Part shown: piece by piece, positions 3,450-60,359 of the stretch
How positions within the stretch are numbered: position 1 is the stretch's first letter
Layout: every line of letters starts with the position of its first letter
Assembly (NCBI RefSeq): GCF_036365525.1
Contig: NC_090404.1
Location: forward strand, 11,374,550 to 11,438,549
DNA from: Heterodontus francisci
Taxonomy: Eukaryota
Length of the DNA: 64,000 bases
Direction of reading: 5' to 3'
Position numbers and translations under genes: made by a program
The notes under the pieces: generated by a model
What the model saw: only the letters and a program-made list of their open reading frames with translations
Databases searched by the model: none
What the model was told of the DNA's origin: nothing

Positions 3450-3885
3450 AAAATGCATTGAATGAAATTGCAACTTTCACTTTGTTGATATTAGGTGAGT
3501 GTTTTGTGCAGAAAAGTGTTCGGCGTTGGAACATTTTTATCGTTTCTCTTGTATATCGGTAGCTATCGGCGGAGAGAATGTGATCCACCAACCACAGCAG
3601 ATGTTTACATAAGAGGGAGGAGAATCGATTGAAATCCAGTGCAGTGCAACCACCAGCGGCACCGACAGCATCCACTCGTACAGAGAGCTACAGAACCGTG
3701 GTCCCAGATTCAGGATATCTGCTATTATCGGCAACGCCATTGATGGGCGGTTCAGACTCTTCATTGAGCCAACAAGATATTATAACATTCTCGGTACTGA
3801 CAACACCGCGGTATCTGACACTGGAGTCTTTTACTGTGCAGTGAGGCACTGTGAGACAAAGACTGAGCACTCCAATACAATATCT
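3450..3885 (+). pseudogene. TCR alpha/delta-type V pseudogene (plus strand) with 23-RSS
   Basis: Leader remnant IATFTLLIL with gtgagt at 3495. V frame is ENVIHQPQQMFT*EGGESIEIQCSA...IHSYRE...GRFRL...VSDTGVFYCAVR, with TAA at 3610. RSS is CACTGTG (3847-3853), 23 nt, ACAATATCT (3877-3885). Confidence 0.88.
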
Positions 3886-4309
3886 GCTGCAGGTCCCGCT
3901 CAGACCATCTCCACACATCTACTTTTCTGTGTTGTCTGCTTTATGGGTGGATTTCCACAGGCTTCATCCATCCGATAAAGAAGGGGTTATTCAGACTGTC
4001 CTGAATGTGTTGTTTCCTTTGTGAGATACAGTTCCACAGACTCCATTCATTCGGTTAGAAAAGGATTTTCCTGGATTCGAACACTCAGCGCCAGGTCTGA
4101 CCCTTTAGAGAGTCACTATCACAAAGGAACAGGATACTCCTGAATTCTCCCCATAAGAATGATGGGCACTTGCTGATATTCAAACAACTGACATGTCCAG
4201 ATTTGAACCGCTGGCAAAGGGAGCAGCGGATCAACAAGTTACCTCCTGACATCGGATGAGCAATATCCAGTTCCAGCCAATAGAAGAGCAGCAAACACAT
4301 GTGACTGAG

Positions 4310-6160: not shown

Positions 6161-6540
6161 AAAACACATGGAGCGACCTCCCAGCTCATTACTGTGGGGG
6201 AAAGGAGGGCGGCAGCTTCTACTGACAGAACAACTTGCCCAGTCCCACCCCGTGTACATCAGACTAATGTGGGAGGGAATTTCACATCAGGCTCACAGAC
6301 CCAATGAAGCGACAGAAAACTGCAGGTTCCCTCTTTAAACCTGTCGCTTATTCACACAACACACAGCCAGAGACCCGGGAACCGTGCGGCCCATCAATGA
6401 TCTCCAGGACACTGCCCTCTGCAAATCAACCCGACCCCCTGAAGTATTTCAGTCCAGCTCTGAGGTCCAGTCTCCCAGAGCAGTCCAGGGCTGCAGTCTC
6501 CAGCTCCCCGTCATATAAACCATCAGCTCCAGGCAGCAGA

Positions 6541-7043
6541 ATGATGGGAATCCTCCTTGTTTTCACCCCGTGAGTACCGATCAAACAAACCGACATTGTG
6601 TGGATTTAACATAAAGCTGCTCGAGTCCATCCGAATTACAGACACTGTCGCGGGTTTGAACCTCGTTGTGTGGTTCGGCTCTGATGGCCCATTAAACTCG
6701 CTCTGATTAATTTCCAGACTCTTTCAGTCAGTCAGTGACACAGACCCCGGCAGCGGTGACCAGGAAGGAGTGTCAGTCTCTCACCATCACCTGTGTTCAT
6801 AATGGTGGTTATTGGGATTATACTTCCCGAAATGGCCATTTCTTCAGACAAACCCAGACCGGGACAGAGTGGGAGCGGATCTCTGGTGGAGGCTGATTTG
6901 ATGTGTCGGTGAATAAGGGAGAAAAAACATTTTCACTGGAAATTCAGGATGCAAGAGTTGAAGACACCGCCACCTATTACTGTAAAGCTGAATACTGGTA
7001 CAACACACAGTGATGGGCCTCGGCTTCCCGCGGTACAAGATCT
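6541..7043 (+). pseudogene. NAR-TCR / IgNAR-type V segment pseudogene (leader 6541-6569, V exon 6718-7005) with 22-spacer RSS
   Basis: V exon reads SFSQSVTQTPAAVTRKECQSLTITCVHNGGYWDYTSRNGHFFRQTQTGTEWERISGGG*FDVSVNKGEKTFSLEIQDARVEDTATYYCKAEYWYN. It shows the VNAR-type CDR2 deletion, an extra FR1 Cys and an in-frame TGA. RSS is CACAGTG (7006-7012), 22 nt, ACAAGATCT. Confidence 0.88.
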
Positions 7044-7367
7044 CTCACTGCAGATTATCACAGAAACAAATGAAAAAGCGGAGTTAATCTGCCATTAAAC
7101 CCCATAGTTCCACCCCGCACTGTCTCCCTCACAGTCCAGTTTATAATGAAACTGGATTATTGCCATTAACATCTTGAGTCTTCTAAATGCCGAGTGTGTG
7201 CGGATGGTGATGTCATTCCCGGGATTGGTGTCAGTGAATGGAGGTTTGGAATGACTGATCCCAGTTACAAATCCCTAACACCAGATGGGATCCTGTTCTA
7301 ACAACTGGAACCGGGAAGCACATTCCCCGCCGTTAAACTAATGTCCCCACATCTCACCAAGTACTGG

Positions 7368-7438
7368 GGGATTTGTGTTAACTTGAAACATTTTGTTTAG
7401 TTGGGGAGGCCACAGTGGGAGAGACCAGAGAAAACACC
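7368..7438 (+). other. Putative D segment (7396-7410, TTTAGTTGGGGAGGC) flanked by two 12-spacer RSSs
   Basis: 5' side: GGGATTTGT, 12 nt, CATTTTG (degenerate heptamer). 3' side: perfect CACAGTG (7411-7417), 12 nt, GAAAACACC. G-rich core, located between V and J. Confidence 0.65.
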
Positions 7439-7761
7439 TCAGTATATTTCTGAAAAATTCCCCGGGCCCTGATCCTGAATTGAAGGGTTGATGTTATTCT
7501 CGCTCGAATCTGGTTTAATGTAATTGTAATTTCCTCCTTTCTGTTATCTTTTTCTGTCTTTTTTCTCTCTTTATATGAAGCGCCGATCTCCTACCCATGT
7601 TCCTTGGCCATTTCACTAAGAGCTCAGAGTCTCACAAAGAACAGTTTGATCCCAACGAAGAATATGAAACATGGAATATTGTTTATTGAAATAAAATCAC
7701 TGGAATGATTGGGCCGTGCTGACAGTCTGGTGATGTGTGACCGACAGAATGAGGTGCCGGT

Positions 7762-7855
7762 TGTTCTTGTTCTGGGGTGACTGAGAGCGGTGTCACTGTG
7801 TTATGAGACTAGATATGTGGATGGATCCGGGACGGTGGTGACTGTCACAGACGGT
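7762..7855 (+). other. NAR-type J segment (7801-7853) with 23-RSS and splice donor
   Basis: TGTTCTTGT, 23 nt, CACTGTG (7794-7800), then YETRYVDGSGTVVTVTD and G|gtaagt. It has xGxG-T-V-T-V without F/W, as in IgNAR-type J segments. Confidence 0.88.
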
Positions 7856-7902
7856 AAGTGACTCAAAACCGCGATGCGTTACAGACTTTTCTAACCTTTT
7901 TG

Positions 7903-8045
7903 CAAGTTCTGATGAAAGGTCACAGACCTGAAACGTTAACTTTGCTTCTCTCTCCACAGATGCTGCCTGACCTGCTGAATACTACCAGCATTCTTTTGCT
8001 TTTACTTCAGATTTCCAGCATCTGCATAATTTTGCTTTTAATTAA
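7903..8045 (+). mobile_element. Penelope-like pLTR fragment with minimal type I hammerhead ribozyme motif
   Basis: caagtt CTGATGA aaggtc-aca-gacct GAAA cgtt aactt. The downstream sequence matches the 3' end of the GIY-YIG element at 25154-26060. Confidence 0.8.
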
Positions 8046-8319
8046 CATTTCAGGTAGTGTGATCTGTATAATCCTGGCAGAGATCAACTTTTCCAGACAG
8101 ACCCTGCGGGATAATTCCTGGGGTTTTACTCACTAAAGCAATAGATACAATATAAGTGACATGGACACAGAGTGTGATACAGGATCTTCACTCAGCCTCC
8201 GCACTGAACAATTTCTCTGTAATTTCAACCTCCATTTTCTCTCCTCTCTCTCTCCTCAAAGCTCACTGCCCTCCGTTCCTCCCCAAATCTCTCTCCTGAC
8301 ATGTAAACTCTCCAGGCCA

Positions 8320-11240
8320 TATTTTTTGTTTCGGCAGTTTCTTTTTGCAGCGGCGACAGGGAGAGCGAGGTGGCAGCTGGGTAAGTGAGTTTACAAGTTA
8401 TATAAACTTACCTTTTTGTTTCGGCAGTTTCTTTTTGCAGCGGTAACAAGGAGAGCGAGGTGGCAGCTGGGTAAGTAAGTCCTATATATTTGGGCAGCGG
8501 GAGTATGATGTCATTGCTATTACTAAGACTTGGTTGAGGGAAGGGTATGATTGGCAACTAAATATCCCAGGATATCGATGCTTCAGGCGGGATAGAGAGG
8601 GAGTTAAAAGGGGTGGAGGAGTTGCATTACTGGTCAAAGAGGATATCACAGCTGTGCTGAAGGAGGGCACTATGGAGGACTCGAGCAGTGAGGCAATATG
8701 GACAGAACTCAGAAATAGGAGGGGTGCGGTAACAATGTTGGGGCTGTACTACAGGCCTCCCAACAGCGAGCGTGAGATAGAGGTACAAATATGTAAACAG
8801 ATTCTGGGAAGATGTAGGAGCAACAGGGTGGTGGTGATAGGAGATTCTAATTTTCCCAACATTGACTGGGATTCACTTGGTGTTAGAGGTCTAGATGGAG
8901 CAGAATTTGTAAGGAGCATCCAGGAGGGTTTTCTAGAGCAGTATGTAAATAGTCCAACTCGGGAAGGGGCCATACTGGACCTGGTGTTGGGGAATGAGCC
9001 CGGCCAGGTGGTTGAAGTTTCAGTAGGGGACTACTTTGGGAATAGTGATCACAATTCCGTAAGTTTTAGAATACTCATGGACAAAGACGAGAGTGGTCCT
9101 AAAGGAAGAGTGCTAAATTGGGGGAAGGCCAACTACACCAAAATTCGGCAGGAGCTGGGGAATGTAGATTGGGAGCAGCTGTTTGAAGGTAAATCCACAT
9201 TTGATATGTGGGAGGCTTTTAAAGAGAGGTTGCTTAGCGTGCAGGAGAGACATGTTCCTGTGAAAATGAGGGATAGAAATGGCAAGATTAGGGAACCATG
9301 GATGACAGGTGAAATTGTGAGACTAGCTAAGAGGAAAAAGGAAGCATACATAAGGTCTAGGAGGCTGAAGAAAGACGAAGCTTTGAAAGAATATCGGGAA
9401 TGTAGGACCAATCTGAAATGAGGAATTCAGAGGGCTAAAAGGGGTCATGAAATATCTTTAGCAAACAGGGTTAAGGAAAATCCCAAAGCCTTTTATTCAT
9501 ATATAAGGAGCAAGAGGGTAATTAGAGAAAGGATTGGCCCACTCAAGGACAAAGGAGGAAAGTTATGCGTGGAGTCAGAGAAAATGGGTGAGATTCTAAA
9601 CAAGTACTTTGCATCGATATTCACCGAGGAGAGGGACATGACGGATGTTGAGGTTAGGGACAGATGTTTGATTACTCTAGGTCAAGTCGGCATAAGGAGG
9701 GAGGAAGTGTTGGGTATTCTAAATGGTATTAAGGTGGACAAGTCCCCAGGTCCGGATGGGATCTATCCCAGGTTACTGAGGGAAGCGAGAGAGGAAATAG
9801 CTGGGGCCTTAACAGATATCTTTGCAGCATCCTTAAACACGGGTGAGGTCCCGGAGGACTGGAGAATTGCTAATGTTGTCCCCTTGTTTAAGAAGGGTAG
9901 CAGGGATAATCCAGGTAATTATCGACCGGTGAGCCTGACGTCAGTGGTAGGGAAGCTGCTGGAGAAGATACTGAGGGATAGGATCTATTCCCATATGGAA
10001 GAAAATGGAAGCGACAAGGTTGATTGATGAGGGAAGGTCTGTAGATGTCATATACATGGACTTCAGTAAGGCGTTTGATAAGGTTCCCCATGGTAGGCTG
10101 ATGGAGAAAGTGAAGTCGCATGGGGTCCAGGGTGTACTAGCTAGATGGATAAAGAACTGGCTGGGCAACAGGAGACAGAGAGTAGAAGTGGAAGGGAGTT
10201 TCTCAAAATGGAGACGTGTGACCAGTGGTGTTCCACAGGGATCCGTGCTGGGACCACTGTTGTTTGTGATATACATAAATGATTTGGAGGAAAGTATAGG
10301 TGGTCTGATTAGCAAGTTTGCAGATGACACTAAGATTGGTGGAGTAGCAGATAGTGAAGGGGACTGTCAGAGAATACAACAGAATATAGAAAGATTGGAG
10401 AGTTGGGCAGAGAAATGGCAGATGGAGTTCAATCAGGGCAAATGCGAGGTGATGCATTTTGGAAGATCCAATTCAAGAGTGAACTATACAGTAAATGGAA
10501 AAGTCCTGGGGAAAATTGATGTACAGAGAGATTTGGGTGTTCAGGTCCATTGTTCCCTGAAGGTGGCAATGCAGGTCAACAGAGTGGTCAAGAAGGCATA
10601 CGGCATGCTTTCCTTCATCGGACGGGGTATTGAGTACAAGAGTTGGCAGGTCATGTTACAGTTGTATAAGACTTTGGTTCGGCCACATTTGGAATACTGC
10701 GTGCAGTTCTGGTCGCCACATTACCAAAAGGATGTAGATGCTTTGGAGATGGTGCAGAGGAGGTTCACCAGGATGTTGCCTGGTATGGAGGGTGCTAGCT
10801 ATGAAGAGAGGTTGAGCAGATTAGGATTATTTTCATTAGAAAGACGGAGGTTGAGGGGAGACCTGATTGAGGTGTACAAAATCATGAGAGGTATAGACAG
10901 GGTGGATAGCAAGACGCTTTTTCCCAGAGTGGGGGATTCAATTACTAGGGGTCACGAGTTCAAAGTGAGTGGGGAAAAATTTAGGGGGATATGCGTGGAA
11001 AGTTCTTTACGCAGAGGGTGGTGGGTGCATGGAATGCGTTGCCAGTGGAGGTGGTAGACGCGGGCACGATAGCATCTTTTAAGATGTATCTAGACAGATA
11101 CATGAATGGGCAGGAAGCAAAGAGATACAGACCCTTAGAAAATAGGCGACATGTTTAGATAGAGGATCAGTATCGGTGCAGGCTTGGAGGGCTGAAGGGC
11201 CTGTTCCTGTGCTGTAATTTTCTTTGTTCTTTGTTCCACC
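8320..11240 (+). mobile_element. CR1 LINE, ORF1 deleted, ORF2 (APE endonuclease + RT) broken by a stop and a deletion
   Basis: ORFs 8534-9421, 9569-10027 and 10005-11057 with GDSNFPNIDW, YRPVSLTS and FADDTK. 5' tandem ~90 bp repeats; 3' tail ttctttgttc. Confidence 0.93.
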
Positions 11241-14760: not shown

Positions 14761-15856
14761 CACATCGCAACCCCCACCCCCACCCCCCATGTGTATTCCA
14801 AGTGTAGGGACATCCCATCAGCCCCCAGAAAGTGCTAAATTCCTCATTCAACTGGGAGGAAGCTGCTGACCCCTTTGGGAGACTTTGTAAAATCACTGCA
14901 CCTGGATTTATTTTGGAAAATCAGACCATGTGGAAGGATGTGACTGAGGAGCCAATCTGTAGATGCTGGGAGCTCACACTGGAGACCCCCAGGTCCATCC
15001 CCTGCCACTCTGTATTGATGTCTCTCCCACTGTTTCCCTCATTCTCTTCCCTCTCTCCAGTAGTCGTGGTCCACATCGGAATCAATGACCAAATGCTGGA
15101 AGCTGGGATGAGGCTAGGTGGATTGTTTTTCTGGCCGGCGCAGACACGATGGGCCAAATGGCCTCTTCCTCAAATTCTATATTTCTATGACGTTGTGAAG
15201 TTGTTTCCACTTGTTAATGAATGGAAATCCATGGGCCATGAATACAGTTACTGATAAATCCAACAGGGAAATAAGGAGAGATTTTTTTTCTCAGAGAGTG
15301 GGTAGAACATGAAAGTGGTTGAGGCAAATAGTTGAGATGCTTTCAAAAGGAAACAAGGTTAAACATGAGAAAAAAGAGAACAGAAAGGACTGCTGAAAGG
15401 CTGGAATGAGGGAGATGGAATGGGAGCAGAGGCGTGAGGTGTGTAAGGACCTGTACAGACTAGTTGGACTGAATGGCCTGTTTGTGTACTGTGTATTCTT
15501 TGTCATTCAATGCAATCTCCTTTTACAGAGGATTAGATGGGGAGGATCTGCAAATGGCAAACTCAAACCAAACATATCGTTAAGATCTGACAGAGTTACT
15601 CGATTCATCAGGACCTGAATATCATCGTCCTTTGAATGTGGAAGGAGAAACGTTTGTTCTGTCTTTGGGAAAAGATTTCAAACATCAATGTGACTGGAAA
15701 AGCACCGAGACACACACACCCGAGTGAGTGCCCCAATGCACTGACTGTGAAAGAGTTTTGACCAGTTACAGAGCCTGAAAAATATCACCCCATTCACAGT
15801 GGGGAGAAACTGTACACGGGTCTGTGTGTGGCCGAGACTTCAACAGATCATCCACC

Positions 15857-17035
15857 ATGGAGAAACCGTGGAAATGTGGAGACTGTGGGAAGGGATTCAA
15901 ATACCCCTGCCGGCTGGAAGCTCATCGACGTAGTCACACTGGAGAGAGGCCGTTCACCTGCTCTGTGTGTGGGAGGGGGTTCAATAATATTTCCAACCTG
16001 CTGAGACACCAGGAAGTTCATCCCGGGGAAAGACCGTTCATCTGCCTTAAATGTGGGAAGGGGTTTAAAACTTTATCAGCACTCCAAACACACCAGCCAG
16101 TTCACTCTGATAAGAGACCCTTTAAATGTTCTGATTGCGAAAAGAGATTTAAAAGTAAAAACATGCTACTGCTACACCAACGTACTCATGCTGGGCAGAG
16201 GCCATTCACCTGCTCAAAGTGTGGGAAAGGATTTACTCGCTCATCCCACTTTCTGAAACATCAGCGAATACACACAGGGGAGAGGCCTTTCACCTGCTCA
16301 GTGTGTGCAAAAGGATTTCCTCACTCATCCTGTGTTCTGAGACACCAGCGAATACACACAGGGGAGAGGCCATTCACCTGCTCCGTGTGTGCAAAAGGAT
16401 TTACTCGCTCATCCTGCGTTCTGAGACATGAGCGAGTTCACACTGGGGAGAAACCATTCACCTGCTCCAAGTGTGGGAAGGGATTCACTCAGTCATCTCA
16501 CCTTCTGACACACCAACTTGTTCACACAGAAAGGAGACCTTTTAAATGTTGTGACTGTGAGAAGAGATATAAAAGTAAAAATTACCTACTGCTACATCAA
16601 CGCACTCACACTGGGGAGAGGCCATTCACCTGCTCCGTGTGTGCAAAAGGATTTACTCGCTCATCCTGCGTTCTGAGACATGAGCGAGTTCACACTGGGG
16701 AGAAACCATTCACCTGCTCCAAGTGTGGGAAGCGATTCATTGGGTCATCCCACCTTCTGAGACACCAACTTGTTCACACAGAAAGGAGACCTTATAAATG
16801 TTCTGAATGTGAGAAGAGATTTAAAAGTCCAAATGAGCTGCTGCAACATCAACCTACTCACACTGGGGAGAGGCCATTCACCTGCTCTGTGTGTGGGAAA
16901 AGATTTTCTCGTTCATCCTGTGTTCTGAGACACCAGCGAGTTCACACTGGGGAGAGGCCTTTCACCTGCTCTGTGCGTGGGATGGGGTTAGCGACTTCAA
17001 AAAAACTACTGAGACACCAGCGAGTTCACAAGTGA
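15857..17035 (+). CDS. C2H2 zinc-finger protein, 13 intact fingers plus 1 degenerate
   Basis: Starts at ccacc[18 protein letters not shown]..., with TGERPF linkers. Upstream acceptor tccttttacag near 15528 is shared with the other ZNF paralogs. Confidence 0.9.
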
Positions 17036-20089: not shown

Positions 20090-23000
20090 GAAAAGGGATG
20101 AAACCAGACTGACCTTCTGGCATCGACCGAGACATCAGAAATGACAACAGCAAAACCAGCCCTGTTGACCTTGCAAAGGCCTCCTTACTAACAGCTGGAC
20201 GCATGTACCAAAATTTGGGAGAGCTGTCCCACAGAGCAATGGCCTGACAGAGTCATACTCATGGAATCAAAACTTACAGGCAATGTCCTTGATGCCATTA
20301 TCGCCATCCCTGGACATGTCCTCTCCCAGCGGCAGGACAGACCCAGCAGAAGTGGCAGCACAGTGGTATACAGTTCAGAGGGAATTGCCCTGGAAGTTTT
20401 CAATTCCAGACACCATGATTCTCATGGCATCAAGTCAAAGGAAACCTCCTGCTGATTACTGCCTACCTCCCCTCAAACCCCCACCCTCCTCAGCAGATTA
20501 ATCAGTACTCCTCCATGTTGAATACCAATTGGAAGAAGCAATGAGGGTGGCAAGCGTATAAAATACTCTGGGGCTTCAATGTCTATTGCCAACAGTGGCT
20601 CGGTAGCACCACTTCTGACCGAGCTGGCTAAAAAACATAGCTGCTAGACTGGGTATGCGGCCGGTGGTGAAGGAACCAACAAGAGGGAAAATCATTGTTG
20701 ACCTCGTCCTCACCAATCTGCCTGCCGCAGATTTTTTTTTTTATTTCCAAAATATACTTTATTCATAAAAATCTGTAAAAATTACATTGCCAAACAGTTT
20801 CCAAACCGCACCAAAAAATACAAACATTGCAAGGGAGATCAGTTTCCTTCAATACTGTCATGAGTTTCTTCCCAACCCTTCCGTTTCACAATTGTCATGT
20901 CAATTACAGTTTTACATTTACAGCAATTGAGAATATTAACGATACAGTTCGAGGGGTTTCCCATGGATCCAGCCCCTCAGTCCAGCTTGGTGGGGGAACC
21001 TTACACTGTGGTCTTTCCCCATTGAGCCTTTGCTGTGGCTGCCCCAAGCTTTAGTGCGTCCCTCAGCACATAGTCCTGGACCTTGGAATGTGCCAGTCTG
21101 CAACATTCGGTGGTGGACAACTCTTTGCGCTGGAAGACCAGCAAGTTTCGGGCAGACCAAAGGGCGTCTTTCACCGAATTGATAGTCCTCCAGCAGCAGT
21201 TGATGTTTGTCTCGGTGTGCGTCCCTGGGAACAGCCCGTAGAGCACAGACTCCTGTGTTACAGAGCTGCTTGGGATGAACCTTGACAAAAACCACTGCAT
21301 CTCTTTCCACACCTGCTTTGCAAAGGCACATTCCAGGAGGAGGTGGGTGACCGTCTCTTCCCCACCACAGCCAACGCGGGGGCACTGGGCGGAGGGGGCG
21401 AGACTTCGGGTGTGCATGAAGGATCTGACGGGGAGGGCCCTTCTCACCACCAGCCAAGCTACGTCTTGGTGCTTGTTTGAAAGTTCTGGTGATGAGGCAT
21501 TCCGCCAAATGACTTTGACGGTCTGCTCGGGGAACCATCCGACAGGATCCACCATTTCCTTTTCCCGTAGGGCCTTGAGGACATTCCGTGCAGACCACTG
21601 CCTGATGGACCGGTGGTCAAAGGTGTTTTCCCGCAGAAACTGTTCCACGAAGGACAGGTGGTACGGCACGTCCCAACTGCACGGAGCGTTCCGCGGCAAT
21701 GTGACCAGGCCCATCCTTCGCAACACCGGGGACAGATAGAACCTCAGCACGTAGTGACACTTGGAGTTTGCGTACTGGGGATCTACACACAGCTTGATGC
21801 AGCCGCACACGAAGGTGGTCATCAGGATGAGGGCCGCGTTGGGTACATTTTTCCCGCCCTTGTCCAGAGATTTGAACATCGTGTCCCTCCGGACCCGGTC
21901 CATTTTAGATCCCCAGACGAAGCGGAAAATGGCTCGGGTGACTGCCACGGCGCAGGAGTGGGGTATGGGCCAGACCTGCGCCATGTACAGCAACAACGTG
22001 AGCGCCTCGCACCTGATGACCAGGTTCTTACCCACAATGGAGAGAGATCGCTGCCCCCACATGCCCAACTTTTGTCGTACCTTGGCTACTCGCTCCTCCC
22101 ATGTTTTGGTGCACGCCCCGGCCCTTCCGAACCATATCCCCAGCACCTTCAGGTAGTCTGACCTGACAGTGAAGGGGACAAAGGATCGGTCAGCCCAGTT
22201 GCCAAAGAACATGGCCTCGCTCTTGCCGTGGTTAACTTTGGCTCCCGAGGCCAGTTCGAACTGGTCGCAGATGCTCATCAGTCTGCGCACGGACAGCGGA
22301 TCCGAGCAGAAAACGGCGACGTCATCCATGTACAGGGAGGTTTTGACCTGAGTGCCTCCACTGCCTGGGATTGTCACCCCTCTTATGCTCGCATCCTTCC
22401 TAATAGACTCAGCAAAGGGTTCAATACAGCAAACAAACAAGACCGAGGAGAGAGGACAGCCCTGTCTGACTCCAGATTTGATCGGGAAACTTTCCGATTC
22501 CCACCCATTGATTGAGACTGCGCTACTGATGTTTGTGTAGAGCAGTTGGATCCAATTGCAGATTCCCTCCCCAAACCCCATTTTAGAAAGCACGTCCATC
22601 ATGTAGGTGTGCGATATCCTGTCAAAAGCCTTCTCCTGGTCCAGGCTGATGAGACAGGTGTCCACCCTCCTGTCCCGTACGTAGGCGATCGTATCCCTGA
22701 GTAGCGCGAGACTATCAGAGATCTTCCTGCCGGGTACAGTACAGGTCTGATCGGGGTGAATCACCAACTCCAGAGCAGACTTGACTCGACTGGCTATGAC
22801 TTTGGACAGAATCTTGTAATCAGCATTAAGCAGTGAGATGGGCCGCCAATTTCTGATTTCTGCCCTCTCCCCCTTCTGCTTGTAAATGAGGGTGATGATG
22901 CCTTTTCTCATGGATTCTGACATGCTGCTGGCCAGGAGCATACTCTCGTATACTTCCAGCAGGTCCGGGCCGACCCAGTCCCACAGGGCCGAGTACAACT

Positions 23001-24112
23001 CGACCGGTAAGCCGTCGCTCCCGGGAGTTTTACTCATCTCGAAAGACTCGACGGCATTTGTCAGCTCGTCCAGAGTTAGCGGCTTGTCCAGTCCCTCCCT
23101 CCTGCTGTCATCTAAGACCTCTGTGATAGATGACAGGAAGGACTGGGAGGCTCTGCTGTCTGTGGGCTTCGCGTCATACAGCCCAGCATAAAAGGATTTG
23201 CTGATCCTGAGTATGTCGGGCTGCGAAGACGTTACCGAGCCATCTTCTTCCTTCAGGCTGCTGATAACAGAGCTCTCTCTGTGTACCTTTTGGAAGAAGT
23301 AACGCGAGCACGTCTCATCCTGCTCGATGGAGTGGACTCTGGACCGGAAGATGATCTTGGAGGCCTCCTTGGCAAAGAGTGAGGCCTGCTGGCTCTTCAC
23401 CTCTTGGAGGTCCTCCTTGACCTCGACCCCCATTGACTGCAACCGGAGTAGATTTTGCATAATTTTCTGGAGTCGGGACAGTTCCCTCTGTCTCTCTCTC
23501 GCCTTCTGAACACCTTTGTGGATGAAGAACCTCTTGATGTTCTCCTTAATCGCTTCCCACCAGTGAACTGGAGACTCAAAGAGGGGTTTCACGGTCCTCC
23601 AACCTTTGTAATCCCTTTTGAGTTCCTCAACGTTCTCTGGGGTCAGCAGTGTCGCATTGAGCTTCCACGTCCCTCTGCCAACCCGCTGGTCGTCCTGTAA
23701 GTGACAGTCGGCCAGTAAGAGGCAGTGGTCGGAGAAGAACACCGGCTTGACGTCGGTGGATCCGACCGTGACAGCACGGGACACAAACAGGAAGTCAATC
23801 CTGGAACGGGCAGACCCGTCCGATCTTGACCATGTGTATCTGCGCTGCGCTCCGTCTGCAGGTTTGCTGAAGACGTCGTGCAGTTTGGCATCCTTAATTG
23901 TTTCTATTAGGAATCTGGACGTAGCGTCCAGTTTGCTGTCGTCACTGCCGGATCGTCCAGCCGCATCGATGATGCAGTTGAAGTCACCGCCTAGGATGAC
24001 CGCAGATGCATCTGTCTTTGACAGTATTGGTAGGAGTGACTATCACACAGTCCTTGTGGAGACAAATTTACATCTTCACATTGAGGATACACTTCATCGT
24101 GTTGTGTGGCGC
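20090..24112 (+). mobile_element. Host L2/Crack-like LINE endonuclease fragment, split by the Tx1 insertion
   Basis: IPGHVLSQRQDR...PTRGKIIVDLVLTNLP before the insertion and SIGRSDYHTVLVE after it; continuous once the insertion is removed. Confidence 0.65.
20733..24000 (-). mobile_element. Tx1/L1-clade LINE, 5'-truncated, ORF2 frame intact (open 24000-21001)
   Basis: GGDFNC and SDH endonuclease motifs, RT motifs QGCPLS/YMDD, C-terminal CxxxxC..H..C knuckle, AATAAA plus poly(A). TSD CGCAGAT at 20726-20732 and 24001-24007. Confidence 0.95.
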
Positions 24113-24475
24113 TAAAGGGTGGCGCAGTGGTTAGCACTGTGTGAGGGGATGTGCGAGGCAAGTTCTTTGCACAGAAGTTGGTGAGTGCCTGGAACTTGCT
24201 GCTGGGGGAGGCAGTGGAAGCAGGTACAATGGCGACGTTTAAGAGGCATCTTGACAAATACATGAATAGGATGGGAATCGAGGGATATGGGTCCCAGAAG
24301 AGCAGAAGGTTTTTGTTTGGGCAGGCATCAAGATCGGCGCAGGCTTGGAGGGTCGAATGGCCTGTTCCTGTGCTGTATTGTTCTTTGTTCTAACACTCTC
24401 CTGTAATAAATACTGACACTCCTCTTTTCTCCCCACTCTGCCCACTGCTCCATTCACCTTGTCACATTGAGGCAG

Positions 24476-25015
24476 TGTTTTTGTACGAGGCTCCCTCTGG
24501 TTCCTGTCACTGTGTCTCTCAGCCCGCAGTAATACATTGCGCTGTCAGACAGCCGCAGGTCGCGGATGGTGAAATTCTGCTCACTTTTCAAAGTGTCGAG
24601 AGATGCAGAAAATCGATCCTCCACACTCTCTGCTCTGTAGTTGGGGATGTAAATGAGGAATGTGGGGCCTTTATCCCGGTCCTGATAGTACAGTTGTAAG
24701 GAATAGGAAGTAGCAGTGGTCGAATAGCTGTAATTAATGGTCAGCGAGTCTCCTTCAAACTGCATCGCTGTAACCGGCCCCTGTGAGATCGAGTCTGCAC
24801 CACTAACACCTGCAGAAATTTAGAAATACAGAACTTTAAGGTTCTGTTATCATTTAAATTCTAACTAAAATCATCAGGCAACTGAATACATTTTAAATCG
24901 AAATCACAATTAAAAGGCGAATGATGCCTGAAAGAGGAAGATTGTGTAACTTGTAAACTTTACCCGTTAAGAGAGCTGCAGCTGTGAGGAACGAATACAA
25001 AGTAACAAGCAACAT
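24476..25015 (-). CDS. TCR alpha/delta-type V segment, copy B (leader 25015-24964, V exon 24809-24515, 23-RSS 24514-24476); lacks Cys23/Trp41
   Basis: MLLVTLYSFLTAAALLT / ...TINYSYS...LQLYYQ...SDSAMYYCGLRD, then CACAGTG-23-ACAAAAACA. Confidence 0.9.
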
Positions 25016-25153
25016 GTTTGCAGAGAGTTGATGGCGGGTTTGAACAGAACTGGTGGAATCTGAAATTGTTTCAGTCAAGAGGTGGGAAGATTCACTTCCG
25101 GTCTCTCTACCGATTGGTTCATTCCTGAAACAGTCAATAGATGATGGCCAATC

Positions 25154-26060
25154 GCAGGAGGTGTAATACCTGCCCATTTACCTCCTCTCTCCTCACTATC
25201 CCAGGCCCCAAACACTCCTTTGAGGTGAAGCAGCGATTTACTTGTACTTCTTTCAATTTAGTATACTGTATTCGCTGCTCACAGTGTGGTCTCCTCTACA
25301 TTGGGGAGACCAAGCGCAGACTGGGTGACCGCTTTGCGGAACATCTCCGCTCAGTCCGCAAGCAGGACCCTAAGCTTCTGGTTGCTTGCCATTTCAACAC
25401 TCCCCCCTGCTCTCATGCTCACATCTCTGTCCTGGGATTGCTGCAGTGTTCCAGTGAACATCAACGCAAGCTCGAGGAACAGCATCTCATCTACCGATTT
25501 GGCACACTACAGCCTGCCGGACTGCACATTGAGTTCAATAATTTCAGAGCATGACAGCCCCCCATTTTACTTTCATTTTTAGTTATTTTTTCTTCCTTTT
25601 TTTTTACATTCCTTTTTACATATTTTACAATCTTTTTTTGCATTTATTTCATTTCATCTTAGTTTGTTCAGTTTGCTTACCCGCTGTTTTTTTCAGGTTG
25701 TTTTTCTTCAGGTTTGCACTTGCTGCTGTTCAATATTCAGTGTATTCACACCTAATCTGTACTAATGCTTTGTCATTCAACACACATTAACATATTGTTT
25801 GCCTTTGCTCCGTGACCTTTTGGTCAGCTATTTGGCCAGGTCCAATCTGCACCTTCTCCTTTTTTATCTCTTGCCCAACCCCCACCTCACTTGTTTATAA
25901 TCTGTGACTTTTCTAATATTTATCAGTTCCGAAGAAGGGTCACTGACCCGAAACGTTAACTCTGCTTCTCTTTTCACAGATGCTGCCAGACCTGCTGAGT
26001 GATTCCAGCATTTCTTGTTTCTGTTTCAGATTTCCAGCATCCGCAGTATTTTGCTTTTAT
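25154..26060 (+). mobile_element. Penelope-like retroelement 3' part (GIY-YIG endonuclease + pLTR with hammerhead motif)
   Basis: NLVYCIRCSQCGLLYIGETKRRL. 18-bp TSD AATAGATGATGGCCAATC at 25136-25153 and 26061-26078; absent from copy A. Confidence 0.93.
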
Positions 26061-26337
26061 AATAGATGATGGCCAATCAGTTCAAGATCTTTTGTTCTCA
26101 AATTTATCCAATCAGCTCACGGTTTCTTTGCTCTCCGATTTCATGACGTCAGAGCGGGAAGCGGGAAATGAGTGAAATTGTTCCCCTGACAATAGGGAAC
26201 TGGACGAGAATTAAACTAAATGTTGGCCTTTAACAGTTTTGGTCAGTCTGTGACTGACATAGCGTCTGCAATACACAAATGTGTCATTCGGCCTAACTGG
26301 TCTTTCATTTGGTTCCCGTCCAACTATCTGTTAACAA

Positions 26338-26461
26338 CAAAAACAAGAAATGCTGGAATCACTCAGCAGGTCTGGCAGCATCTGTGGAAAGAGAAGCAGA
26401 GTTAACGTTTCGGGTCAGTGACCCTTCTTCGGAACTGCATCCGCAGTATTTTGCTTTTATT
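26338..26461 (-). mobile_element. Short inverted Penelope pLTR insertion
   Basis: Reverse complement of ~25924-26025 plus a short forward tail. 13-bp TSD TATCTGTTAACAA at 26325-26337 and 26462-26474. Confidence 0.88.
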
Positions 26462-26512
26462 TATCTGTTAACAATGCAAGTCCCAGATATGATTCAGTGA
26501 GAGTCCTTTTAT

Positions 26513-26984
26513 GGTTTTAATATGGACTGATTGCCCCTCTGGAACAGTGTGGGGTTCAGTGCAAAGTGATACACGGCAGAGTCAGAGACAAGTGCCTGGC
26601 AACTTTTAAAGGAACAGTTTTCTTTCCTTTTTCCAAAACTGCAGAGAATCGATCGGGAAATCTTGAGACATCTTCCTGCCCCATGCTGTATTTCCTCAGT
26701 AAATATCTCGGAGCTTCAGCGGGATACTGGATGTACCAGAAGAGGTAGGGAATGTTACTTGATGTGGAGTTACTGCAGTTCACTATTATAGTCTGTCCTT
26801 CTTGAATGGTTAATTCAGGTGCAGTCTGGGACACGAAGTCTCTTCCATTCGTTCCTGCAGCATAAACACACAAGGTGTCAAAATTTTGGGAGTAATTATA
26901 ACCCATGGAACACACACTGACCAGTTAATGACAGACTCACTGGGCAGCAGGACTACTATTATCACTAAGGAACATGGAGAGCAT
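26513..26984 (-). pseudogene. TCR alpha/delta-type V pseudogene (second family), copy B, with 23-RSS
   Basis: GTNGRDFVSQTAPELTIQEGQTIIVNCSNST...LFWYIQYP...; FR3 frameshift; YHF in place of YYC. RSS is CACACTG (26551-26545), 23 nt, ATTAAAACC. Confidence 0.88.
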
Positions 26985-27216
26985 CCGGTGTCTGGTTTAG
27001 AGTCCAACGGAAAATAATATTATGTTTTAATTGTGTTGAACTTTCCAGTCTGATATTGGAGAATAAACTCAGATAATGGGGAGAGTTCATTTGACAGGAT
27101 TGGCTGCTCTCAGAACTGACAACAGATGTGCGCCAAACAGTGTGAGCTGTGGTCCAGTTACTCATGTCTCCCAACAAAACAAACCCTATCCTTGCCAAGC
27201 TGTGTGAGTGAATCTT

Positions 27217-27321
27217 TAATAAAAAAATAAGAAATTCTGGAATCACTCAGCAGGTCTGGCAGCATCTTGTGAAAAGAGAAGCAGAGTTAACGTTTCGGGT
27301 CAGTGACCCTTCTTCGGAACT
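27217..27321 (-). mobile_element. Third Penelope pLTR fragment insertion
   Basis: Same sequence as 26338-26436; absent at the matching position (~2310) in copy A. Confidence 0.85.
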
Positions 27322-27478
27322 CTTCCCTCTTTGTTTCTCTTTCTCTCCCTCTGGCTCGAAGTGTTGGCGTAACACGATATGTTTAAATTGGCCTCTGTTG
27401 CTCTTTGCCTCTCTACGTGCGTGTCCCTCTGACTATCTGTGTGTGTATGTCCAGGTCTCACTCACTTTGTTTAACTCA

Positions 27479-33350: not shown

Positions 33351-34445
33351 TCACTTGTGAACTTGCTGGTGTCTCTGTAGGTGGGATAACTGAGTGAATC
33401 CCTTTCCACACACGGAGCAGGTGAATGGCCTCTCTCCAGTGTGAACTCGCTGGTGTTTCAGAAGGTTGGACGAATGATTAAATCCCTTCCCACACACAGA
33501 GCAGGTGAAGGGTCTCTCCCCAGTGTGAACTCGCTGGTGTGCCAGAAGGTTGGACGATTGCTTAAATCCCTGCCCACAAATGGAGCAGGAGAATGGCCTC
33601 TCCCCAGTGTGAACTTGCTGGTGTGTCAGCAGGTTAGATGATCGCTTAAATCCCTGCCCACAAATAGAACAGGTGAATGGCCTCTCCCCGGTGTGAATGC
33701 GCTGGTGTCTCAGCAGGAGGGTTGAATTTATGAATCCCTTCTCACACACGGAGCAGGTGAACGGCCTCTCCCCAGTGTGAACTCGCTGGTGTGCCAGAAG
33801 GTTGGACGATCGCTTAAATCCCTGCCCACACACAGAGCAGGTGAACGGTCTCTCCCCACTGTGAACTCGCTGGTGTGACCGCAGGTTGGATGAATCCATG
33901 AATCTCTTCTCACACACGGAGCAGGAGAATGGCCTCTCCCCCGTGTGAACTCGCTGGTGTGTCAGAAGGTTGGACAATCGCTTAAATTCCTGCCCACACA
34001 TGGAGCAGATGAACGGCCTCTCCCCAGTGTGAACTTGCTGGTGTGTCAGAAGGTCGGACAATTGACGAAATCCCTTCCCACACACAGAGCAGGTGAATGG
34101 CCTCTCCGCGGTGTGAACTCGCTGGTGTGCTCGGAGGTGGGATGAATCAATGAATCCCTTCTCACACACAGAGCAGGTGAACGGCCTCTCTCCTGTATGA
34201 ACCAGCTGGTGTTTCAACAGGTCGGATGACTGAGTGAATCCCTTCCCACAGATGGAGCAGGTGAAAGGTCTCTCCCCAGTGTGAACTCGCTGGTGTGTCA
34301 GAAGGTTGGACGATCGCTTAAATCCCTGCCCACAAATGGAGCAGGTGAACGGCCTTTCCCTAGTGTGACTCGGTCGATGTGTTTCCAGCTCAGATGGGTA
34401 ATTGAATCCCTTCCCACATTCCCCACATTTCCACGGTTTCTCCGT
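33351..34445 (-). CDS. C2H2 zinc-finger protein frame, 13 fingers; expected start ATG mutated to ACG
   Basis: Uninterrupted frame (T)[13 protein letters not shown]...HQQVHK* of 365 codons. Paralog-type acceptor near 34797. Confidence 0.82.
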
Positions 34446-35089
34446 GGTGTGGGTGTACTTGTGTTTCTCCAGATTGGATGATCAGTTGAAGCCTCGGCCA
34501 TACACAGAACTCACCACTGTGAATGGGGTGATGATTTTTCAGGCTGTGTAACTGGTTAAAGCTCTTTCCACAGTCAGTTCACTGGAACACTCTCACTCGG
34601 GTGTGTGTGTCTCGGTGCTGTTCCAGTTACACTGATGTTTGAATTCTTTTCCCACAGACAGAACAGACAAATATTTCTCCTTCCACATTCAAAGGCCAAT
34701 GATATTCCGATCTGATAAATAGAGTGACTCTGTAAGACCTTGAGGTGATCTTTGGTTTGAGTTTCCTGTTTGCAAATCCTCCTCTTCCAATCCCCTGTAA
34801 AAGCATTTCAAGAAAGCCATCACTGTCAATACAGGATAGAAATTCTGAACAGACAATTCTAGTTTCTACGCAACATTTCTTCCTCTCTTGTTCCCCCAAA
34901 GCTGTAAATCCCCATCCCACACACTCTGCCTCCTCCCTGTGCTGAAATCCAAACCTATTACACCATTTCTTTCCTCCACTGCCAGTTTTCTCCCTCCCTC
35001 TACTCTGACTGGGTTCAGTTCTCCAGCCCCTGTGTGCAGAGTGAGAATCAAATCAATGAGTCAATGATTTTTTCTCGGAGTCACTGAGA

Positions 35090-45649: not shown

Positions 45650-45790
45650 CAGACACCAAATCTAGGGAGTACTTACACTGAGGCACCAAATACAGGAAAC
45701 ACTTATACTGAGGCACCAAATCCAGGGAGTACTTACACTGTGGCACCAAATACAGGGAGTACTTACACTGTGGCACCAAATACAGGGAGT
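45650..45790. repeat. 30-bp minisatellite, left part
   Basis: (cagggagtacttacactgtggcaccaaata)n. Confidence 0.9.
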
Positions 45791-48700
45791 AGAACAAAGA
45801 ACAAAGAAAATTACAGCACAGAAACAGGCCCTTCGGCCCTCCAAGCCTGCGCCAATCCAGATCCTCTATCTAAACATGTTGCCTATTTTCTAAGGGTCTG
45901 TATCTCTTTGCTTTCTGCCCATTCATGTGTCTGTCTAGATACATCTTAAAAGACGCTATCATGCCCGCGTCTACCACCTCCGCTGGCAACGCGTTCCAGG
46001 CACCCACCACCCTCTGCGTAAAGAACTTTCCACGCATATCCCCCCTAAACTTTTCCCCTCTCACTTTGAACTCATGACCCCTAGTAATTGAATCGCCCAC
46101 TCTGGGAAAAAGCTTCTTGCTATCCACCCTGTCTATACCTCTCATGATTTTGTACACCTCAATCAGGTCCCCCTTCAACCTCCGTCTTTCTAATGAAAAT
46201 AATCCTAATCTACTCAACCTCTCTTCATAGCTAGCGCCCTCCATACCAGGCAACATCCTGGTGAACCTCCTCTGCACCCTCTCCAAAGCATCTACATCCT
46301 TTTGGTAATGTGGCGACCAGAACTGCACGCAGTATTCCAAATGTGGCCGAACCAAAGTCTTATACAACTGTAACATGACCTGCCAACTCTTGTACTCAAT
46401 ACCCCGTCCGATGAAGGAAAGCATGCCGTATGCCTTCTTGACCACTCTATTGACCTGCATTGCCACCTTCAGGGAACAATGGACCTGAACACCCAAATCT
46501 CTCTGGACATCAATTTTCCCCAGGACTTTTCCATTTACTGTATAGTTCACTCTTGAATTGGATCTTCCAAAATGCATCACCTCGCATTTGCCCTGATTGA
46601 ACTCCATCTGCCATTTCTCTGCCCAACTCTCCAATCTTTCTATATTCTGCTGTATTCTCTGACAGTCCCTTTCACTATCTGCTACTCCACCAATCTTAGT
46701 GTCGTCTGCAAACTTGCTAATCAGACCACCTATACTTTCCTCCAAATCATTTATGTATATCACAAACAACAGTGGTCCCAGCATGGATCCCTGTGGAACA
46801 CCACTGGTCACACGTCTCCATTTTGAGAAACTCCCTTCCAGTGCTATTCTCTGTCTCCTGTTGCCCAGCCAGTTCTTTATCCATCTAGCTAGTACACCCT
46901 GGACCCCATGCGACTTCACTTTCTCCATCAGCCTACCATGGGGAACCTTATCAAACGCCTTACTGAAGTCCATGTATATGACATCTACAGCCCTTCCCTC
47001 ATCAATCAACTTTGTCACTTCCTCAAAGAATTCTATTAAGTTGGTAAGACATGACCTTCCCTGCACAAAACCATGTTGCCTATCACTGATAAGCCCATTT
47101 TCTTCCAAATGGGAATAGATCCTATCCCTCAGTATCTTCTCCAGCAGCTTCCCTACCACTGAAGTCAGGCTCACCGGTCTATAATTACCTGGATTTTCCC
47201 TGCTACCCTTCTTAAACAAGGGGACAACATTCGCAATTCTCCAGTCCTCCGGGACCTCACCCGTGTTTAAGGATGCTGCAAAGATATCTGTTAAGGCCCC
47301 AGCTATTTCCTCTCTCGCTTCCCTCAGTAACCTGGGATAGATCCCATCCGGACCTGGGGACTTGTCCACCTTAATGCCTTTTAGAATACCCAACACTTCC
47401 TCCCTCCTTATGCCGACTTGACCTAGAGTAATCAAACATCTGTCCCTAACCTCAACATCCGTCATGTCCCTCTCCTCGGTGAATACCGATGCAAAGTAGT
47501 CGTTTAGAATTTCACCCATTTTCTCTGACTCCACGCATAACTTTCCTCCTTTGTCCTTAAGTGGGCCAATCCTTTCTCTAGTTACCCTCTTGCTCCTTAT
47601 ATATAAATAAAAGGCTTTGGGATTTTCCTTAACCCTGTTTGCTAAAGATATTTCATGACCCCTTTTAGCCCTCTGAATTCCTCGTTTCAGATTGGTCCTA
47701 CATTCCTGATATTCTTTCAAAGCTTCGTCTTTCTTCAGCCTCCTAGACCTTATGTATGCTTCCTTTTTCCTCTTAGCTAGTCTCACAATTTCACCTGTCA
47801 TCCATGGTTCCCTAATCTTGCCATTTCTATCCCTCATTTTCACAGGAACATGTCTCTCCTGCACGCTAATCAACCTCTCTTTAAAAGCCTCCCACATATC
47901 AAATGTGGATTTACCTTCAAACAGCTGCTCCCAATCTACATTCCCCAGCTCCTGCCAAATTTTGGTATAGTTGGCCTTCCCCCAATTTAGCACTCTTCCT
48001 TTCGGACCACTCTCGTCTTTGTCCATGAGTATTCGAAAACTTACGGAATTGTGATCACTATTCCCAAAGTAGTCCCCTACTGAAACTTCAACCACCTGGC
48101 CGGGCTCATTCCCCAACACCAGGTCCAGTATGGCCCCTTCCCGGGTTGGACTATTTACATACTGCTCTAGAAAACCCTCCTGGATGCTCCTTACAAATTC
48201 TGCTCCATCTAGACTTCTAACACTAAGTGAATCCCAGTCAATGTTGGGAAAATTAGAATCTCCTATCACCACCACCCTGTTGCTCCTACATCTTTCCATA
48301 ATCTGTTTACATCTTTGTACCTCTATCTCACGCTCGCTGTTGGGAGGCCTGTAGTACAGCCCCAACATTGTTACCCCACCCTTCCTATTTCTGAGTTCTG
48401 CCCATATTGCCTCACTGCTCGAGTCCTCCATAGTGCCCTCCTTCAGCACAGCTGTGATATCCTCTTTGACCAGTAATGCAACTCCTCCACCCCTTTTACC
48501 TCCCTCTCTATCCCGCCTGAAGCATCGATATCCTCGGATATTTAGTTGCCAATCAGACCCTTCCCTCAACCAAGTCTCAGTAATAGCAATAACATCATAC
48601 TCCCAGGTACTAATCCAAGCCCTAAGTTCATCTGCCTTACCTACTACACTTTTAGTTTAGTTTAGTTTAGAGATACAGCACTGAAACAGGCCCTTTGGCC

Positions 48701-58799: not shown

Positions 58800-59735
58800 A
58801 GGAAACCCGTTTACATCAAGATCTGACAGTCACTAAATTCATCAGGACCTGAATATCATCAGATTTTGAACATGGAAGGGAAAAGCACCGATCACAGCGG
58901 AGAGAAACTGTACACATGTTCTTTGTGTGGTCGAGATTTCAGCCGATCATCTGGCCTGTCGTGGCACAAGTGCAGTGACACTGGGGTGAAACCATGTGAA
59001 TGTGGGACTGTGGGAAGCAATTCGATTACCCGACCCAGCTTGAAGCTCATCGGCGCAGTCACACCGGGGAGAGGCCATTCACCTGCTCCGTCTGCGGGAA
59101 GGGATTCACTCGGTCATCCAGCCTCCATACACACCAGCGAGTTCATACTGGAGAGAGAGAGTTTAAATGCCCAGACTGTGATAAGAGCTTTAAAAGCCCA
59201 CGTTCACTGAGGGAGCACCAGCGCATTCACACTGGTTCCACACCGTTCAGCTGCTCTCACTGCGGGAAGAGGTTCAGGCGATTGTCCAACCTGCTGACAC
59301 ACCAGCGGGTTCACACTGGGGAGAGGCCATTCACCTGTTGAGTGTGGGAAGGGATTCACTCAATCATCCAACCTGCTAACACACCAGCGAGTTCACACTC
59401 ACGAGAGAATTTTTAAATGCCCAGACTGCGGGAAGTGTTATAAAAGTTCTGTGGAACTGACATGTCATCAACATGTTCACACTGATGAGAGACCATTCAG
59501 GTGCGCTCACTGTGGGACTGGGTTCAGACAATTATCTGAACTGACTGTACACCAATGCACTCACACTGGGGAGAGGCCATTCACCTGCTCCGTTTGCGGG
59601 AAGGGATTTACTCACTCCTCCGACATGCTGAGACACCAGCGCACTCTCACTGGGGAGAGGCCGTTCACCTGCTCCGTGTGTGGGAAGGGATTCACTGTCA
59701 TCCAACCTGTTCAGACATCAGTGAGTTCACAAGTG
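58800..59735 (+). pseudogene. C2H2 ZNF pseudogene (frameshifts)
   Basis: Finger arrays split over ORFs 58866-59210, 59000-59341 and 59451-59789; ends in the paralog-typical gttcacaagtga. Confidence 0.85.
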
Positions 59736-60359
59736 ACGGCATGGGTTGATTCTGCTGTTAATGCTGCTGATAATCACATCCAGAAGTGATTCATGTTCTT
59801 TTTGAAATCTGAAGTCTTTTTTCTGAAGTTCATAACCCGTAAAACTGGACTGGAGTTTAATATTCAGGATGTTTGTCAAATAAATCAGCTTTGGTTTAAA
59901 CACATTGTTGTAGATTTTTGTCTTTCCCACCTGAGTGTTTAACATCACCTGGCTGGAGCTCAGAAAGGACAATCTGGGGGGAGGATCATGTGGCAGGAAC
60001 AGAACTTCAGCCTGGACACAGTCCTTCAGGATCACACTGAGAGGGACAAACAGCACTTTGGTCTTTCTCGTCTCTCTTCACTGACAGCAAAGTCCCCGTG
60101 TGGGTTAATCCTGAGGCCTGTAAGAAATGTGTCCCAGCTACTCTCTCCCATGGTTCAGAGCTCCTGGACACGGAACAGAAGGCTCCTTTACAACTGTGTT
60201 TAGAGTCAGGAAGAACAACGGTGAATGCTGGAAACGTGCTGTCAAATCAGAGATTGATGTAAAATTGTGAGCTGTTCCTGACTGAAAGTGAAACGGCAGG
60301 TTTAAGTTTCCAGCCTGCAAATGACTGTGGTAATTAATCTACGAAGATTTAACATGCAA

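Follow-up and report, generated by a model that had tools for sequence, protein, structure and literature searches.

A probable orphan NAR-TCR V-D-J pseudogene in a putative TCR alpha/delta V region of Heterodontus francisci

The window, a stretch of 64,000 nucleotides from the shark Heterodontus francisci, contains a leader exon, a NAR-type V exon, a V RSS, one D and one J, in this order on the plus strand (sequence reading of 6300–8100 and RSS scans). With high probability, these features are best explained as a decayed, orphan NAR-TCR V-D-J cassette within the V region of a probable shark TCR alpha/delta locus. NAR-TCR is a doubly rearranging TCR delta chain of cartilaginous fish (Criscitiello, Saltis & Flajnik 2006, via PMC1845163, PMC3457774, PMC5931798 and PMC12227049), and recent work has placed it on the maps of several genomes (PMC12227049). 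The cassette is best described as an orphan NAR-TCR V-D-J pseudogene and not as a complete NAR-TCR gene unit, because the linked, leaderless supporting V-delta with a Cys in CDR1, a defining requirement of such a unit, is absent. A first-pass annotation had identified a NAR-TCR cassette, and the closest proteins, the phylogenetic tree, the hallmark residues, the single D and the lack of a downstream constant exon are congruent with that identification. The annotation included neither the orphan state (no supporting V-delta after the J) nor the abundance of the NAR-TCR family, which is already modelled in shark genomes.

The leader, V, D and J that the first-pass annotation had described, in order on the plus strand and with RSSs, are all found where it had placed them. 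The features of the cassette and of the repeats directly behind it are as follows.

6541–6569, plus strand: truncated leader exon of 29 nt, with ATG at 6541 and 6544, ending in phase 2; donor GTGAGT at 6570
6570–6717, plus strand: leader intron (gt...ag), with acceptor ag at 6716–6717; the paralogue splice joint is at the same place in RNA runs X12 and X5
6718–7005, plus strand: NAR-TCR-type V exon, which needs phase 1; Cys in RKECQSL, HFFRQ in place of WYRK, no CDR2, ends in YYCKA
6894–6896, plus strand: in-frame TGA, where every homologue has Arg (GGR-F)
7006–7043, plus strand: V RSS, with heptamer CACAGTG at 7006–7012, a 22-nt spacer and nonamer ACAAGATCT at 7035–7043 (6/9)
7368–7395, plus strand: 5' D RSS, with nonamer GGGATTTGT (7/9), a 12-nt spacer and the degenerate heptamer CATTTTG
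7396–7410, plus strand: single D of 15 nt with a TGGGG core
7411–7438, plus strand: 3' D RSS, with a perfect heptamer CACAGTG, a 12-nt spacer and nonamer GAAAACACC (6/9)
7762–7800, plus strand: J RSS, with a nonamer at 7762–7770 (reverse complement ACAAGAACA, 7/9), a 23-nt spacer and heptamer CACTGTG at 7794–7800
7801–7853, plus strand: J exon, reading YETRYVDGSGTVVTVTD plus 1 nt (phase 1); donor gtaagt at 7854
7884–8040, no strand assigned: SINE-like dispersed repeat whose start is 30 nt past the J donor; the window has five more copies at 80–85% identity
8499–11239, plus strand: young LINE/reverse-transcriptase insertion, 97–98% identical to 45789–48604, with long reverse-transcriptase-type open frames

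The RSS scheme of the cassette is V22 - 12D12 - 23J with a single D. Within 7013–7793 there is one candidate D, and no further RSS-flanked D is found. In the 64 kb window, the heptamer-22-ACAA pattern occurs once (0.09 expected) and the heptamer-23-ACAA pattern occurs three times (0.08 expected). All three of the latter adjoin a V or the cassette J. The RSSs of the cassette are more than chance matches, because these counts are far above expectation and the RSSs abut coding ends. The annotated presence of RSS motifs on each segment is correct overall, with two corrections: the V spacer has 22 nt rather than 23 nt, and the heptamer on the 5' side of the D is degenerate. The D core letters ACTGGGG and ACTGG appear in the junctions of paralogue V-D-J joints in the contigs. 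The region upstream of the leader is conserved with the H. francisci paralogues and translates like parts of two of their gene models, P0004 and P0079. This region contains an octamer-like CTGCAAAT (6419–6426) and a TATAAA (6514–6519). These two motifs were considered as a promoter of the cassette; as paralogue RNA contigs reach upstream of both, no start site is claimed.

The V exon reads QSVTQTPAAVTRKECQSLTITC...HFFRQTQTGTEWERISGGG, then TGA at 6894–6896, then FDVSVNKGEKTFSLEIQDARVEDTATYYCKA. Owing to the in-frame stop, the V was searched as two separate pieces, the first of which is 55 aa long. Among solved structures (PDB), the first piece is most similar to shark VNAR domains, to which it aligns end to end through WERISGGG with an E of 2e-5. 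V residues 2–55 pair with residues 2–53 of the solved VNARs, in agreement with the annotated absence of CDR2. TCR beta chains match in FR1 only. Against 1.84 billion representative proteins, the first piece has 22 matches, and the best 13 hold a NAR-type V. These 13 include proteins of Cetorhinus, Heterodontus francisci (78% identity), Hemiscyllium, Scyliorhinus, Mustelus, Chiloscyllium, Rhincodon, Pristis and Callorhinchus.

In the two-domain models, the NAR-type V is followed by the J DGSGTVVTV and then directly by a second, highly conserved V (PPLQTSAAGDTV...SGFCQYTVHWY...SDSAVYYCAL). Judged by their sequences, the two-V models match the published NAR-TCR architecture up to the second V. 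P0001 and P0006 continue into a C-terminal C-type region, which is aligned at its start only. A profile search adds more than 50 models with two Vs, from sharks, skates, sawfish and a devil ray. With protein P0009 and with the profile as queries, the matches are NAR-TCR-type models and distant VH only. The J that had been annotated as DGSGTVVTV in the window is the same J that is joined to the supporting V in gene models P0001–P0008 and in an RNA contig.

A maximum-likelihood tree was built from 55 V domains, namely NAR-TCR Vs, supporting Vs and window Vs, with no IgNAR V row and with the stop read as X. It places the window V inside a clade of 27 N-terminal NAR-TCR V domains (97/97 support), separate from both the 17 supporting Vs and the TCR-type Vs of the window. 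A tree had been proposed as a check of the family assignment. The supporting Vs of different species form one clade (92/95). By descent, the V and J very probably belong to the NAR-TCR gene family. There is next to no probability that the V is an ordinary TRAV/TRDV, or a V exon of a non-rearranging IgSF family, whose likeness to NAR is due to chance. Pfam does give a generic V-set match in the second V piece and no match in the first. The 97/97 separation from the window TCR Vs and the supporting Vs, the presence of its own D and J with RSSs, and the lack of CDR2 all argue against a chance likeness. This reading is refuted by the homologue search, the tree and the RSS, D and J evidence.

The likeness to IgNAR V domains is closer. 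The window V and the VNARs are alike in their single-domain layout, which lacks CDR2, in the ...GGR-F/Y...SFSL...YYCKA framework and in a J of the GxGTxxTV type. The cassette could in principle be the remnant of a true IgNAR cluster, which encodes a secreted heavy-chain-only antibody, with its constant exons lost. Such an origin is highly improbable and is largely refuted by the sequence comparisons. It would fit the NAR type of the V, the solved VNARs as best PDB matches, and the mapping of IgH isotypes, including IgNAR, near TCR alpha/delta (PMC12227049). The NAR-TcR V differs from the IgNAR V in its leader, in a Cys in the a-b loop and in the loss of the Trp of WYRK (PMC1845163). The window V has the a-b loop Cys (RKECQSL) and lacks the WYRK Trp (HFFRQ), which is the reverse of an IgNAR V. 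This Cys had been annotated as a non-canonical FR1 cysteine, and the same EC(Q/E)(S/T) is present in 27/27 homologues, nearly all of which also have FF(R/K)Q. VNARs keep W(F/Y)RK and ETGESL, whereas the window V reads FFRQ and KECQSL. The bit scores of the window V are 52–80 against NAR-TCR V and at most 28 against solved VNARs. IgNAR has three D segments, and the cassette has one. A J of the DGSGTVVTV type is spliced to the supporting V-delta in gene models and in RNA. IgNAR is followed by its constant exons, whereas no C-type open segment and no Pfam C1-set match is found after the window J, in 7855–64000. The distinction from IgNAR is drawn from the hallmark residues, the bit scores, the single D and the lack of constant exons, as the tree has no IgNAR row.

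The orphan NAR-TCR cassette resembles NAR-TCR in several respects. It has a NAR-type V with its own leader exon, with the a-b loop Cys and without the WYRK Trp. A separate D and J, each with RSSs, belong to the cassette, and the J donor is of the type that is joined to a supporting V-delta. It sits among TCR alpha/delta-type V segments, and its nearest relatives are models of other sharks that consist of a NAR V and a supporting V, with or without a C-type region. Unlike NAR-TCR, the window copy lacks a leaderless supporting V-delta within 56 kb. Its leader is truncated, its V contains an in-frame stop, the heptamer 5' of its D is crippled, and the RNA contigs do not show this copy. The TCR mu chain of marsupials and monotremes is also a three-domain TCR chain, in which an antibody-like outer V sits on a supporting V (PMC3457774). 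In contrast to NAR-TCR, TCR mu has a VH-like V and is found only in mammals. The likeness between the two is convergent, and they are unrelated.

Four H. francisci paralogues are modelled (XP_067869961, XP_067870253, XP_067870000 and XP_067869946). P0002 (XP_067869961) is 78% identical to the window V over its first 55 V residues. The paralogues share with the cassette the translation of the D-J spacer (FTKSSESHKEQ in P0079), the same J and the upstream region (P0004). They differ from it in that three of the four models (P0002, P0053 and P0079) run into a supporting V, while P0004 does not. None of the four contains the in-frame stop, and the VDJ of P0002 is already joined in the germline.

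In working copies, V is rearranged to D and then to J by RAG under the 12/23 rule, with a 22/23-RSS on the V, 12-RSSs on both sides of the D and a 23-RSS on the J. Splicing then links the J exon to the V(D)J exon of the leaderless supporting TCR-delta V, and this in turn to C-delta. Four defects bar the window copy from this pathway: a leader exon put out of phase by the loss of 17 nt, a V Arg codon turned into TGA, a crippled heptamer 5' of the D, and an absent supporting V-delta with repeats inserted just behind the J. The cassette is expected to be nonfunctional because of the leader loss, the TGA, the 5' D heptamer and the absent supporting V-delta. We infer that the lesions arose secondarily in a unit that had been complete.

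The window leader exon encodes MMGILLVFTP only. In spliced RNA contigs of paralogues (X12, from the same animal, and X5, from a second species), 6572 is joined to 6719 with 15 extra letters between them. With these letters the leader reads MGILLVFTPCVCLPRSFS in full, a form also present in P0053 and P0006. A normal leader exon is calculated at 46 nt and ends in phase 1, as opposed to 29 nt and phase 2 in the window. The phase argument is likewise one of arithmetic and compares a 29-nt exon with a V exon that needs phase 1. The deficit of 17 nt relative to the expressed paralogue puts the leader out of phase, which both confirms and explains the annotated phase defect. The missing 17 nt lie between two ACCCCGTG repeats, and the CVCLP part of the signal peptide is gone with them. 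An alternative ag at 6726–6727 restores the phase but gives a leader of 10 residues, and the stop in the V is still present.

At 6894–6896, the window has TGA where all aligned homologues have Arg. The paralogue RNA contig reads GGG CGA TTT at this position (loose end at 6911), and the CGA>TGA change proposed in the first-pass annotation holds. The 5' D heptamer, CATTTTG, lacks GTG beside the coding end. From the known function of RSSs, this crippled heptamer should block V-to-D joining.

The NAR-TCR family is expressed in X12, an RNA-type run from the same animal, in which both leader-to-V splice joints and V-D-J joints are present. The paralogue J is spliced to a supporting V, and a loose end at 7850 reads ...ADSSSLVSQS. 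A search of RNA for V-D-J joins had been suggested with the cassette J, and it recovers paralogue joints; at the seven diagnostic places, only paralogue letters are found. At these places (6826, 6829, 6919, 6935, 6946, 6992 and 7816), all of the RNA contig depth has the paralogue letter (7/7). None of the window copy's own letters appears at these V and J places in the X12 contigs, which drop rare variants. In the DNA run X1, the window's own letter keeps depth at only two of the seven places (approximately 10/307 for its T at 7816 and 68/287 for its A at 6992). Judged by the ratio at 7816, the genome may hold some tens of similar copies. We infer that the cassette copy is silent; low expression is possible, since the contigs drop rare variants.

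It is very unlikely that the cassette works, or works as one of two alleles, with the stop and short leader being assembly errors or haplotype defects and a supporting V-delta lying beyond the window. An RNA contig with a full leader is 98.5% identical to 6437–6572 and could represent the other allele rather than a paralogue. The DNA contigs leave 6512–6564 uncovered, and the TGA and the leader deletion are read from the assembly. The 98.5% contig differs from the window at 6431 and 6542 as the second-species contigs do, which suggests the paralogue state. A working cassette would also have to be reconciled with four independent defects, with RNA contigs that lack the window's own letters at the seven V and J places, and with repeats directly behind the J.

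Two further observations were made in the contigs. A V-D-J joint of 18 letters, which encodes DGTGVD and joins 6995 to 7808, is present in both the DNA run and the RNA of the source animal. The same joint is the junction of gene model P0002. Its presence in DNA suggests that another place in the genome holds a NAR-TCR VDJ paralogue already joined in the germline. In the second species (X5/X6), a 1235-nt contig runs from V through D to J without rearrangement, with approximately 92% identity over 6719–7880. Its first 84 letters are off the stretch, and it has a 1-nt gap near 6906–6909. A 280-nt contig of the same run contains a spliced leader-to-V joint. Together, the two contigs suggest that a cassette is transcribed in its unrearranged, germline state (a sterile transcript).

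With nine supporting Vs as tblastn queries, no supporting V-delta is found in the 56 kb downstream of the J or elsewhere in the window. The best match is 36% identical and falls on ordinary V segments. Across species, the supporting Vs are approximately 55–80% alike, estimated by eye from printed sequences. The TCR C-type parts of P0001 and P0006 have no tblastn match in the window, and no D-delta, J-delta or C-delta is found there. The LINE at 8499–11239 occupies a position where a supporting V-delta might be expected if the distances between J and supporting V are short. The rest of the downstream 56 kb consists of retroelements, C2H2 zinc-finger arrays and more V pseudogenes. Rather than being lost, the supporting V may be located beyond 56 kb, or an assembly error may have parted it from the cassette.

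The V pseudogene at 3613–3846 on the plus strand was considered as a displaced supporting V and rejected. It lies upstream of the cassette, has a candidate leader exon ahead of it (identified by eye), and is approximately 21–23% identical to the supporting Vs. As a whole, this pseudogene spans 3455–3975 on the strand of the cassette and consists of a candidate leader exon, a V whose FR1 contains a TAA, and a degenerate RSS, in which CACTGTG has the wrong sense.

A NAR V(D)J has been proposed to have been carried between TCR delta and an IgW-type cluster, giving rise to IgNAR (PMC12227049). Similarly, the NAR V-D-J unit in the window may have moved as a block and so become detached from its supporting V-delta, rather than being left behind by a deletion; this is improbable. 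The one observation in favour of movement is the absence of the supporting V. The cassette lies in the opposite orientation to four of the five flanking V segments.

The flanking V segments are TRAV/TRDV-like and have 23-RSSs. They read as TCR alpha/delta-like, in line with their earlier description as TCR-type. Two of them, at 664–966 and 24517–24819 (both minus strand), are open and 96% identical to one another, with perfect 23-RSSs and the sequence ...SLTINYSYS...YSLQLYRQ. Both have Tyr in place of the canonical Cys23 and Leu in place of Trp41, and both keep YYC. The same two replacements are present in P0147, an apparently rearranged V-J-C chain, and in P0148 of Chiloscyllium punctatum (with Phe for Cys23). 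In P0147, the V is followed by a J and then by a C, which at its start (PKLSAFYPP) matches the beginning of the P0006 C-type region. V segments of this type may form a TCR V family that is conserved and expressed although it lacks the canonical disulfide and Trp.

Two other TRAV-like Vs, at 1649–1978 and 26595–26924 (both minus strand), read NCSYS...PYLFWYIQYP and are damaged. One has an in-frame stop and has lost Cys104, and the other is frameshifted before YYC. The regions 289–2530 and 24143–27477 form a segmental duplication of approximately 95% identity with two V segments in each copy. Their similarity stops before the block that contains the V pseudogene at 3613–3846 and the NAR cassette.

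The window also contains mobile elements and zinc-finger sequences. The LINE copies at 8499–11239 (plus strand) and 45789–48656 (minus strand) are 97–98% identical, and one has an open frame of 928 codons; the pair is a recently active retroelement. A reverse-transcriptase frame of 1012 codons is located at 21004–24039 (minus strand). C2H2 zinc-finger arrays are found inside the V region at 15779–17032 (plus strand), 33354–34481 (minus strand) and 58827–59786 (plus strand). These arrays have an internal periodicity of 84 nt and are approximately 70–75% alike. An open segment at 25141–25551 (plus strand) has a weak match to the GIY-YIG nuclease (E 1.6e-4) and possibly derives from a Penelope-like element.

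The cassette adds one pseudogene to a multigene family that is already described in nurse shark, elephant shark and others, and that is modelled in several shark annotations. Alone it is of little weight, and it is useful as an annotation, since the ORF track misses the cassette. If it did move as a unit, it would be a present-day case of the mobility through which IgNAR is proposed to have arisen. It is also a record of how such a unit decays, through a CpG-type stop, a small leader deletion, the loss of an RSS heptamer, and the loss of the supporting V beside retroelement insertions. For the NAR-TCR family in this genome, the cassette provides a germline reference for the RSS layout V22 - 12D12 - 23J with a single D.
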